Assembly: GCA_907165135.1 (NCBI GenBank)
Contig: OU015568.1
Location: 1,736,001 to 1,800,000 of the forward strand
Origin: Oikopleura dioica
Lineage: Eukaryota > Animalia > Chordata
Direction: 5' to 3'
Length of the DNA: 64,000 nucleotides
In this document: positions 25,516 through 28,954 of the stretch, one piece after another
How positions within the stretch are numbered: the stretch's first letter is position 1
Layout: the number at the start of each line of letters is the position of its first letter
The notes under the pieces: model-generated
The model's input: only the letters and a program-made list of their open reading frames with translations
The model's database searches: none
Told to the model about the DNA's origin: nothing
Made by a program: the position numbers and the translations under genes

Positions 25516-28500
25516 TCAGGGGCAATCAATGTAAGGATATCCACCGCAAATTCTGCACTTCGGCTTGTTACAGGCATTGCATCCTAGACCACCATGTGGA
25601 TCGCTTGAGGTCCAGCATCTAGAAAACAGATTCGTTGCTGAGATTTTTATTATTTCTACCGTTCATCGTAAAAGGTGTTCCCTCCGCAAACTTTATTGCA
25701 ATCGTATTCTTGCGCTTTTGTGGTGGTTGTTGTTTTTGTCGTTGTTGTCGTCATTGTCGTTGTCGATTCGGAAATCACTGTTGAAGAGCTCCCCGAACCT
25801 TGGAAAAAATGGCGATGAGAAGTTTAGCTACCAGTATTTCTACCTGTTTGAGTTGTCGATGAGTCAGTTGTGGAAGACTGAGTTGTCGTAGATTGAGTTG
25901 TAGTAGGAGGTTGAGTCGGGCAAGCAATGTCATATGGAGGTGATCCGCCGCAAAATCTGCAATATCGAACTCCACAAGCGCTTTAAAAGAGAACTTTATA
26001 ATCGACATTAAAGTTCAAGCCATTACTTGCATCCAACTCCACCATGTTCGCAACGAACGTCCCACTCCGCGCCCCAGCAATGCGAGCAATCGCCAGTCGG
26101 GGGCGGTGTTGTCGGAGCTTTCGTCGTTGTTGTCGTCTGAACAAGAATCTACCCAAAAAACAGCAAAATAAAATCACACTTTTTGGGTTCCCGTGACGAG
26201 CTCGCCGAGTGTTCGGAAAGCTTGGGAGCATTCAGAAATCTCAGCATCCGCTGCCACCCCATCAGCATCATGCCAATCTCGCGATTCGCGAACGGAAAGG
26301 CGGCATGATTCTACAAATCCCTCCAGTTCCAGCTCAAGATTTACATACTCATCATCGTTTCCGAGCGCATCTGCGAGGTCTGGATCGGAAAGCTTTAATC
26401 AGATTTATTTAAAACGGTCTGAATTTCCGCTCCTACCTGGAAGAAGATATCGTCTTTCCATTTCAACGAAGAGATTCTGTACGTTTCACCGAGCACAACA
26501 TGCATTCCATATCCATTTGTGTATTTATGATCAACCCAGCCTTTTGACAAATCAAATTTTTGTATTTTTCAAAAAGAAGAGACGTGAACTGTCGAAAAAA
26601 ATGATCTTAATTTGCGTAAAAATGAATGGATAAAATATTCTTGTGATTCATTCCTGAGCCTCCGTGAGTCTTATCATACCAAATGTGCCCCGCATTTGTC
26701 CCTCCAACTGGATGATCCCAATTCGGTGAGACATCATACCCAGGCCCAGTTATTTTTATTGTATCACCCATGTTCGGGCTGAAAATTACCATTCTTCGGA
26801 TATTCTGCCCCTCGCAGACAATTCCGTCGCCATATTTCTTCACCGGTCCGGAGCAATTGGGAACTTTGAGGAATCCATTCAATCTGCCGCTGATGACTTG
26901 TTTGTGTCCATCAATACTGTTGTCGCTGGCGATGAAAGTGGGGGACATTGGATTGCCATCGCTAGGGCCAAAGTGGAAATAATTACCGCTGAGCTCCGAA
27001 AAATCGACGTTTTCGAACAAGTATTGGACTGCACAAGTGCTACCAAAATTATTATGAGGGTTGTGAAAGTAAATTCCACAGTGCTGCGGGACTTGGAGGC
27101 TTCCCCAGCCGGCGTATTTTGTATCCTTCATTTTGAACGTAAATGAGCCTCCGGGGAAGAGGGTCGTTGCGCTACCAATATTATCATTTGGATCGGCGAG
27201 GAAAAATGAGTTCTTGACATGATAACGGCCTTTTTCGACAAAATTCTTTGATCGCTTCCAGTAGCCATTGTTGATATTGTTCACAGACTTGAGGCCGTCG
27301 AACTCGATGTCACCGACGGAATATCCTCCGACAAACATGTTGTGGTAGTTAAAGTCGTTTTTGATGACGCTCACGAAGCCGTTGTCTTTCCCGTCGGGTC
27401 TGACGAATGCGTTGCAGCTTTCCAATCCATAATTTGTCTAAAAAAAGAAGAATTTCTAGAGCAATGACGTTCTATCATAGAAAATAAAATAGTCATGACT
27501 CATGACTCATTACGTTAAATATTCATACCTTCAAAACATGAGCTTGATCGTCTCGTTGGAGGTCTCTAGAATATTGATTGTCCAAATAGATTCCGAATCG
27601 CTGATTATCATGCCAGACGTTATCCTCGAATCGCCCAAATGGTTGATGAGTATTGCATGTTTTCCCCGTCGCAAATCCTCTTCCGTTTCCAGAGCCGGGC
27701 GACCAAAAGCCATGTTCCATTCCGGCCACTCGATTTCCAATCAAATCATTCGTCATGCCTTGGAAATAGATTCCTCCTTCTTTGAGCCCATTTTGCTCCT
27801 GCCATTTGTTTCCCTGAGCCCAACCGCATTTGAGAATATTTTCGCAGATGATGACGTTTTCGCTAATTGTGTTGTTCATTTCGTTTCCATCTTCTGTGTA
27901 GATCCCGACTGATTTCGGATTCCAGAGCACATTTCGATGAAGTCTAGTTTCATGCGACCCGTGGATAGTAAAAGCGGCCTGGACAGAGTTGTAGACAGAG
28001 TTTCCCTCGTAAACGCAACCAGGACATTTGCCAACAAGGTGAAAGTGGAAACAGTATCGCCCAAGAACGTCATTCTGACCGCAATGATCCAGCTCAGCAA
28101 ATTTTATGACGTGAGTGGTTGGAAGATCATCGTCCTCCCAGAATGCTCCAGTGTGCCAACCCTGCTTGATGGAATGGAATTTGTCCGTATCGCCAGTGAT
28201 TTTGACATTTCGGCTGAGATTGATGACTTCGGCTGCTTTTTCGACCGGTACACCGAATACATCTTTGATTCCTCCCATGTGATTATGTTCTGTTTGCGGG
28301 TCGATCGTGATACCATTCTCGTCGATTCCGATTATCCTGTGCTCGGTTGAAGAGCCACGATTGGTCGTCGCAATCGCTATTTTATCACCAACTCTCCATC
28401 CCATGGATTCGGCACTGTGCTTGAGCGACAAGTGATTATCCCACTTTCCTTGGTCCTTGGAAAGCAAAGTCCAGGTTCTCTCCAAGGTTCTGCCGTAAAT

Positions 28501-28954
28501 TTCAACGCTTGATCCACCAACGCCAGCGAAGAAACGCGACCCAATTTTCGGGTGATAAGGGAAGTTATCCCAGCCTTCTGATTTGCGTGGGTCCCAGTTT
28601 GAAGGAGTTTTGATGAAAATGGTTGCATCGAGCTCCATCGGCTCGTTTTCCGAACCGAGATTAAAGGATCCAGCGCGATCAACGAGGACGTAAAATGATC
28701 GAAGCTCAAGATTTCGTCGAGCAATGTGCCATGAAAATTTTCCCTGAAAAATTTCAATAAAAGTTTCTTTTTCAATTAATCACCTGAATAGTAAGAGTGC
28801 CGACATCCATATTTTCATCAAGAATCCATTCTTCTCCCGCTGGTACAGTGACTTCACTGTTACTATTGTACCTTCCCTTTATAGAGCTCCATAAGACCGT
28901 AGTCCTAGCTCCCCAGGACCCGGAGAGAAAGACGGTTAGTAGGAGATTTTTCAT
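25516..28954 (-). CDS. Secreted G8-domain / parallel beta-helix protein (CEMIP/TMEM2/fibrocystin-L-like core) with two C-terminal Cys-rich modules
   Basis: Signal MKNLLLTVFLSGSWG; G8 (VTVPAGEEWILD..IQGK); AEVINLSRNVKI; RYCFHFHL; FTIHGSH; GIYTEDGNE; FEDNVWHDN; Thr-rich linkers and two GG[VL]GCNAC..CR[FI]CGG repeats. Confidence 0.88.

Follow-up and report, generated by a model that had tools for sequence, protein, structure and literature searches.

What does a protein do that joins a G8/beta-helix core to two small cysteine-rich modules of unfamiliar type? The question is raised by a gene of Oikopleura dioica that runs, from ATG to stop codon, over positions 25516-28954 on the minus strand of a 64,000-nucleotide (nt) stretch of contig OU015568.1 (assembly GCA_907165135.1, contig positions 1,736,001-1,800,000). 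This whole stretch was analysed and is referred to here as the window; coordinates are given in it, and all features of the gene lie on its minus strand. An original prediction, made from the letters alone, had read the encoded protein as a secreted glycanase with an undescribed carbohydrate-binding module (CBM), built like a modular carbohydrate-active enzyme (CAZyme). All elements that it described are present, and the module sequences that it quoted are exact after intron removal. The domain order is signal peptide, G8, beta-helix, a C-terminal core of ~370 residues, a Thr linker, module 1, a long Thr/Ser linker and module 2, with the succession of catalytic-type domain, Thr linker and small module that had been described. 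Judged from its sequence, the protein is secreted and modular, with Thr-rich, mucin-like linkers, and is probably O-glycosylated.

Two assignments form our main result. The core is best classified within the G8/CEMIP-type right-handed beta-helix superfamily, as an intact representative of a subfamily found mainly in protists, and the modules as an extracellular domain family without an entry in Pfam or PDB, which larvaceans have in common with marine protists. The observation behind the original prediction is confirmed and its interpretation is partly supported. Its view of the module as undescribed is upheld, as is a core apart from standard fibrocystin-L, and the GH81 context described below strengthens both; that the protein is a glycanase carrying a CBM we regard as a reasoned inference.

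Family and fold of the beta-helix core

Most of the evidence on the core comes from exon 2 (27529-28743, 405 amino acids (aa)), which was delimited by Pfam, PDB and library matches and carries the G8 domain and the CEMIP-type right-handed beta-helix. Protein searches were run per exon rather than on the joined 991-aa protein, and folding was carried out on proxies, namely the library protein P0206 and, for module 2, positions 886-1029 of contig L009, a 1088-nt JGI sequence from a related Oikopleura lineage. Membership of the G8/CEMIP-type beta-helix superfamily is clear: exon 2 scores above the gathering cut-offs of both Pfam domains, CEMIP_beta-hel (PF24606, 86.5 bits against 27.3, E 2.8e-24) and G8 (PF10162, 31.3 bits against 22.9, E 2.1e-7, with the first third of the domain lying in exon 1), and the motifs HFH, HGxH and EDGxE are visible (here as HFH, HG-H and EDGNE). 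Pfam gave no match on any other exon, exon 3 included.

An exhaustive HMMER search with exon 2 recovered 1474 library proteins at E<=1e-10. At 45-50% identity (E 1e-86 to 1e-105), the best full-length matches have ~800-1800 residues and come from MMETSP transcriptomes, marine metagenomes, the dinoflagellates Breviolum minutum and Prorocentrum cordatum, the green alga Chloropicon primus and the ichthyosporean Pirum gemmata, and exon 3 is 34-46% identical to family members. Proteins of 3000-4500 residues reached only ~1e-28 to 1e-33 at ~30% identity with exon 2; two of these are animal 'fibrocystin-L-like' proteins, from Tubulanus and Macrobrachium. Animals other than larvaceans were not found among the close matches. 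The nearest known counterparts, of ~1000 aa, are the 'G8 domain-containing proteins' of protists (Prorocentrum cordatum, Breviolum minutum, Chloropicon primus and MMETSP sequences, and Pirum gemmata), which have the same core from the G8 domain to the FSD motif at 38-50% identity (E down to 1e-105) and likewise carry swappable tails, among them, in dinoflagellates, a variant of the same Cys module. Unlike these proteins, the Oikopleura-type module has an extra GCxAC cysteine arrangement, and the Oikopleura gene has eight tiny introns and is placed between animal genes. The Pirum proteins, in contrast to the Oikopleura gene, lack the eight-Cys module.

Maximum-likelihood trees of the beta-helix region place the window sequence inside a clade of ~1000-residue proteins. 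Its nearest neighbours are the TARA, SOLA and JGI marine sequences P0206, P0209, P0212 and P0214, then the P0037 group; the next neighbour outward is Pirum (88-91 in the Shimodaira-Hasegawa-like approximate likelihood ratio test, SH-aLRT), followed by dinoflagellate sequences. A fibrocystin-type clade is split off with 100% SH-aLRT at ~1.3 substitutions per site, its named members in these trees being protist (Chloropicon 'fibrocystin-L' and Diplonema), since animal sequences were left out by the length filter. The phylogeny of the core, which had been proposed as a check on the original prediction, thus does not group it with fibrocystin-L.

Part of the nearest-neighbour clade also comes from larvaceans. 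An Oikopleura-type paralogue with three modules, including the variants CRICD and CRACY, is found on contigs L029, L013 and L016, and also L019. Its genomic copy (L016:1-1893) has GT-AG introns of 44 and 58 nt in the Thr linkers, comes from the same sample as the syntenic contig L010 described below, and groups with P0214 and P0212, which argues that at least part of that clade is larvacean. On these comparisons we consider the gene family to be expanded in Oikopleura-type genomes.

The AlphaFold model of P0206, which is 46% identical and has the same architecture, is confident over residues 21-790, with a predicted local distance difference test score (pLDDT) mostly above 90. A continuous right-handed beta-helix of the TMEM2 kind is seen in this proxy rather than in the window protein itself. 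Its best PDB match by Foldseek is the TMEM2 ectodomain (8c6i, E 3e-22, TMq 0.49); below it, as far as E 1e-3, the matches are all polysaccharide lyases, capsule depolymerases of phages or bacteria, and glycosidases of the glycoside hydrolase (GH) families GH87, GH110 and GH28. The modelled core would accordingly share a fold class that is strongly associated with polysaccharide cleavage.

The kinship with CEMIP and TMEM2 on which the original prediction had drawn holds for the shared G8/beta-helix core, yet these proteins are distant and not the closest relatives. TMEM2 (CEMIP2) and CEMIP/HYBID, vertebrate proteins required for hyaluronan depolymerisation, likewise have a G8 domain within one continuous right-handed beta-helix, followed by a beta-sandwich. 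Identity to TMEM2 is only 14% in the structural alignment; the window protein lacks the lectin-like (GG) inserts and the transmembrane anchor, and has Cys modules where TMEM2 has its second lectin-like domain. For TMEM2 itself, catalytic activity is in dispute (PMC10206443).

An ordinary animal fibrocystin-L (PKHD1L1), CEMIP or TMEM2 orthologue with a divergent tail would have the same G8 and CEMIP_beta-hel Pfam domains and would explain why TMEM2 is the best PDB match. We consider this explanation highly improbable. Exon 2 scores 370 bits against the best protist-type protein, ~123 bits against the animal fibrocystin-L-like proteins and 48.8 bits (4e-12) against TMEM2 (PDB 8c6i); the fibrocystin-type clade lies far off in the trees with full support; and the protein has no IPT/TIG domain, GG/lectin insert or transmembrane segment and measures 991 aa against 1300-4300. 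No TIG match was obtained and the chain ends in a Cys module, unlike fibrocystin-L, and no exon has a lectin-like (GG) Pfam match as expected of animal CEMIP or TMEM2. By these comparisons, the core is not an orthologue of fibrocystin-L, CEMIP or TMEM2.

The eight-cysteine modules and their partners

Module 1 (25917-26088, residues 846-887) and module 2 (25519-25700, residues 945-991, the end of the protein) were located from the reading frames and with a hidden Markov model (HMM) built from protist modules. Each is ~45 residues long with eight Cys and is split by an intron, module 1 by intron 6 (26026-25981) inside GCN|AC and module 2 by intron 8 (25659-25619). The shared pattern consists of two N-terminal Cys; an aromatic residue, D, two residues and C; a loop leading to (DPH)GG-x-GC; x-A-C; four residues; C-R-x-C-G-G; 7-9 residues; and C-P. 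Further copies were not found within the window.

That these modules belong to a family reaching beyond larvaceans is firmly supported by profile comparison. With the protist-only HMM, the three module-bearing exon pieces of the window rank 1-3 among 2673 six-frame pieces (E 5e-7, 2e-4 and 9e-3), and the Oikopleura-type and protist-type profiles align in hhalign with 99% probability (E 6e-18). The module HMM gives 43.7 bits for the module 1 orthologue in L009. Across the family alignment (A3, 59 sequences) the pattern is an aromatic residue, D, two residues and C; G-x-G-C; a short loop; C-R-x-C-G; 5-10 residues; and a final C, usually CP, always with eight Cys and in an extracellular context. 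Both window modules fit it. While the Cys count stays at eight, one pair shifts, forming GCxAC in larvaceans and adjacent CC at differing places in the P0219 type and the dinoflagellate type; a shifting pair at constant number fits four disulfides better than metal sites.

The modules had been called unfamiliar, and neither Pfam nor PDB offers a sequence or fold match. A Pfam scan of 27 modules at E<=10 returned only stray single matches, such as CBM_19 at E 0.069 in one member. Sequence and profile searches of PDB gave a best E of 0.37, with zinc-ribbon ribosomal proteins matching over the CRxCG stretch only (E 0.4-1.3), and comparison with known small Cys-rich domains (CBM1, CBM14, CBM18, CBM19, PSI, EGF and knottins) yielded no significant profile or fold match. 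The L009 copy of module 2, modelled with AlphaFold from the 59-sequence alignment, has a pLDDT of 90.1 and a predicted template modelling score (pTM) of 0.71, and shows a short helix and a small beta-hairpin. Fold searches with this model gave no match by Foldseek against PDB, by VIA-align against 48,161 chains or in the ESM-atlas. On the model, an obvious assignment to a known CBM, PSI or EGF domain would be ruled out; for a chain of 48 residues, the absent fold match is weak evidence of a new fold. The literature held nothing relevant on the motifs GGLGC, CRFCG and CRYCG, a protein-atlas search with exon 9 gave no usable match, the P0206 module matched only itself in the protein collection, where the full-length window protein is thus apparently not represented, and a scan of viral contigs for related loci returned no match.

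As to partner domains, the listing of which had been suggested as a check, the searches made here placed the family in protists beside G8 cores, GH81, fn3 and stalked transmembrane proteins, again with no known Pfam domain matched by the module itself. Core relatives with 1-4 copies on Thr-rich linkers include P0037, P0195-P0204, P0206, P0219 and the TARA scaffold L005, and dinoflagellate core relatives carry the variant module (P0007 from Breviolum, P0010, P0022 and P0027). A scan of JGI metagenome contigs for DP[FYH]GGLGC gave 27 loci, Oikopleura orthologues and paralogues included. Many have a guanine-plus-cytosine (GC) content of 61-75% (L014, L018, L020-L024, L026-L028 and L030-L035) and encode the module in proteins without any Pfam domain; one locus of 22% GC (L017:3809-4768, MDTG01088378.1) encodes such a module protein with a signal peptide at its start. 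In several of these proteins an extensin-like PPSPPP stalk precedes the module, after which come a domain of ~120 residues, a transmembrane segment and a long tail; they look like an uncharacterised class of protist surface proteins. The ~120-residue domain after the module has an alternating-strand character and is perhaps SEA-like. Dinoflagellates have tandem arrays with four copies in Effrenium voratum (P0233) and five each in P0225 and P0227, in the variant form aromatic-W-D..C..G.LGC.ADG...CRFCG, and a word search found the module in fn3-containing proteins. Overall there are 1-5 copies per protein; Thr linkers connect them on the G8 cores, and in the arrays of dinoflagellates the copies almost touch. 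The module is thus not an Oikopleura peculiarity but a widespread extracellular domain of marine protists that also occurs in non-enzymatic surface proteins.

One partner speaks directly to function. P0238, a JGI metagenome protein of 910 aa, consists of a signal peptide, a complete GH81 endo-beta-1,3-glucanase (PF17652, 5e-99; PF03639, 2e-36), a Ser/Thr linker of ~100 residues and one module, so that the same module follows a true glucanase and its linker in a protist protein, as the CBM reading predicts. The layout of a modular CAZyme, with catalytic domain, Ser/Thr linker and small terminal modules, is seen both in the window protein and, with GH81, in P0238. Instead of it, relatives of the core carry ricin-B (P0022), F5/8 type C (P0009, P0010 and P0211) or PAN (P0012 and P0217) modules, some of them C-terminal and others elsewhere in the chain. 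We also observed a different tail Cys module, C..PC.Y.....H.C.GR..W...., in place of the eight-Cys module in P0006, P0008 and P0208, with Pirum gemmata among the carriers; this may be another undescribed module.

Gene structure, conservation and genomic setting

The gene model was derived from three-frame translation of 29100-25400 and tblastn with homologues, together with contig L009. It comprises a coding sequence of 2976 nt (991 codons) in nine exons, separated by eight introns of 40-113 nt. L009 is intron-less, ~75-80% identical in nucleotides and colinear with exons 3-9; it is most simply a spliced transcript, which would argue for expression in that related lineage. The junctions from exons 3/4 to exons 8/9 match it, and it confirms those between exons 3 and 4, 4 and 5, 5 and 6, 6 and 7, and 8 and 9.

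Exon 1 (28784-28954) holds the signal peptide and the start of the G8 region; homologues align over 28903-28784 and contig L001 over 28964-28768. As read from the sequence, the signal peptide has a hydrophobic core and small residues, with likely cleavage after SWG. Exon 2 is followed by exon 3 (26654-27437, 261 aa plus 1 nt), which encodes the conserved C-terminal part of the core, comprising the end of the beta-helix and the beta-sandwich region, and was delimited by homologues. L009 reads ..HGSSG-HVDHKY.. across the next junction, which sets it at ..HGGSG|WVDHKY..; because there is no in-frame GT-AG solution at this place and given the L009 junction, intron 3 (26541-26653, 113 nt) must be a non-canonical GA..AG intron. 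The remaining seven are GT-AG introns of 40-91 nt, intron 4 being so once exon 5 starts at LSDP. Exon 4 (26437-26540) carries the conserved GYG..V..GE.Y strand region of the core, placed by tblastn of P0001, P0009, P0019 and P0024 and by L009. Exon 5 (26180-26392, 71 aa) begins with the family's FSD/LSDP motif and forms the acidic end of the core; P0024, P0204, P0206 and P0209 align to it, and the FFQ|LSDP junction agrees with L009.

The tail is encoded by four exons, each supported by its reading frame and by L009 and the first two also by the protist-module HMM. In exon 6 (26027-26136) the Thr/Pro linker 1 leads into the first half of module 1, whose second half lies in exon 7 (25844-25980) together with the beginning of the Thr/Ser linker 2; exon 8 (25660-25798) encodes the remainder of that linker and the first two Cys of module 2, and exon 9 (25516-25618) the rest of the protein, including the stop codon. 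A start of exon 6 at ILVQ was considered and rejected, as L009 favours the downstream acceptor and a start at TTTTTKAP. An AATAAA at 25486-25491, 25 nt past the stop, is the likely polyadenylation signal as read from the sequence.

This is an intact gene under strong purifying selection. Against the orthologous contigs L001, L002, L009, L010 and L011, the proportion of nonsynonymous differences (pN) is 0.04-0.19, with saturation at synonymous sites (pS 0.67-1.05). Between Oikopleura lineages, conservation is highest in the module exons, at 94% aa identity as compared with 79-88% for the core, and module 2 retains 94% identity to its L009 and L010 orthologues despite synonymous saturation. The window protein keeps 113 of the 120 family-conserved positions (those at least 85% conserved across 66 family members).

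In contig L010 the orthologous last exons are again followed by the K2P-channel gene that is their neighbour in the window, and the gene is therefore resident in Oikopleura genomes and not a contamination. The adjoining downstream gene itself (24240-25330, minus strand) encodes a K2P-type channel whose exons are kept in L010 at up to ~91% aa identity in tblastx segments. Upstream, L001:1-5600 has no detectable similarity to window positions 29000-34000, and local synteny appears to be broken on that side between Oikopleura lineages. No synteny with the window was seen in the TARA scaffold L005.

Proposed function and origin

The best overall explanation, to which we give about an even chance, is a secreted modular protein whose beta-helix core acts on polysaccharide and whose modules tether it to a glycan. 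Disulfide-knotted eight-Cys modules would target or tether the core to a polysaccharide or glycan-rich matrix, and the core would bind, and probably cleave or remodel, polysaccharide; candidate substrates are algal food glycans or polysaccharides of the house or matrix. As a class, the small disulfide-rich CBMs (fungal CBM1, hevein/CBM18 and peritrophin/CBM14) resemble the modules in their size of 40-50 residues, several disulfides, conserved aromatics, terminal place after an O-glycosylatable Ser/Thr linker, variable copy number and attachment to a glycoside hydrolase, GH81 in the case of P0238. However, there is no sequence or fold similarity and the Cys pattern differs, so that the modules are likened to these CBMs by layout alone. 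We consider them a credible candidate for a new CBM.

Several observations weigh against this explanation. The TMEM2 ectodomain showed no detectable hyaluronidase activity (kcat below ~1e-5 per minute) and no assignable active site (PMC10206443), so that catalysis by this fold class is not established. The searches found a single clear CAZyme beside the module, GH81 in P0238, and the module also occurs in non-enzymatic proteins, both Pro-rich stalked transmembrane proteins and fn3 proteins, and could instead be a general matrix- or protein-binding unit. In Oikopleura itself, the fibrocystin-like G8/PbH1 protein Oik14 is already a structural component of the house (PMC3390340).

This last point leads to an alternative that we hold possible, if doubtful: an oikosin-like structural protein of the house or extracellular matrix rather than an enzyme, with the beta-helix as a rigid scaffold and the Cys modules anchoring or cross-linking it to cellulose or other matrix from the oikoplastic epithelium. 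Oik14, with IPT, G8 and PbH1 domains, is a house protein from the giant Fol cells (PMC3390340), and expression in the oikoplastic epithelium is on record for four of eight 'fibrocystin homologues' (10.64898/2026.03.31.715263). The inactivity of the TMEM2 ectodomain in vitro (PMC10206443) and the occurrence of the module in protist surface proteins beside extensin-like Pro-rich stalks would agree with such a role. Like the window protein, Oik14 comes from Oikopleura, is secreted and has G8 and parallel beta-helix repeats; however, it has several IPT/TIG domains and overall similarity to fibrocystin (PMC3390340), whereas the window gene lacks these domains and belongs to another clade, phylogenetically far from the fibrocystin type. 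The retention of nearly all family-conserved core residues (113/120) is explained by a conserved active or binding site no less well than by a scaffold, and the partnership of the module with GH81 points to substrate targeting. It is also conceivable, but to our judgement quite unlikely, that the modules are generic disulfide-rich or zinc-stabilised units of protein-protein adhesion or oligomerisation, and the protein a surface or adhesion factor without a glycan role. Their CxxC...CxxC spacing is weakly like that of zinc ribbons, which supply the only PDB sequence matches (ribosomal proteins, as given above), they occur in transmembrane and fn3 proteins without an enzyme domain, and no fold match to a known CBM exists. 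Yet those matches lack significance, disulfides are to be expected in proteins that, like these, are secreted or extracellular, and the Cys count is always even, with its migrating pair. The conserved aromatics, the attachment by Ser/Thr linkers to GH81 and beta-helix cores, and the interchange with lectin-type modules fit a CBM-like role better.

With regard to origin, fusions of core and module are present in dinoflagellates, and both parts have protist affinities. The sister position of the ichthyosporean (holozoan) Pirum would also be compatible with old vertical inheritance followed by losses, so that transfer from a protist is a candidate explanation and not a result. The tunicate cellulose synthase is an existing case of transfer. 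An extended version, which we put forward as unlikely but worth stating, is that the whole protist cassette of core and module was horizontally transferred from planktonic prey and then acquired tiny introns and expanded into paralogues, the module being a new CBM family that marine protists use on glucanases and cell-surface proteins. If true, such a cassette would give larvaceans a protist-style polysaccharide toolkit for algal digestion or house building.

For the secreted, glycan-tethered beta-helix protein that we favour, the module contexts (GH81 glucanase, beta-helix cores and surface stalk proteins) open the way to direct tests of a role in binding carbohydrate or matrix. The modules define an extracellular domain family new to description, represented dozens of times among dinoflagellates, other marine protists and larvaceans. 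A chordate has, and has expanded, a protist-type G8/CEMIP branch distinct from CEMIP, TMEM2 and fibrocystin, which bears on how larvaceans came by their unusual polysaccharide biology and on the role of this enigmatic class of beta-helix proteins.

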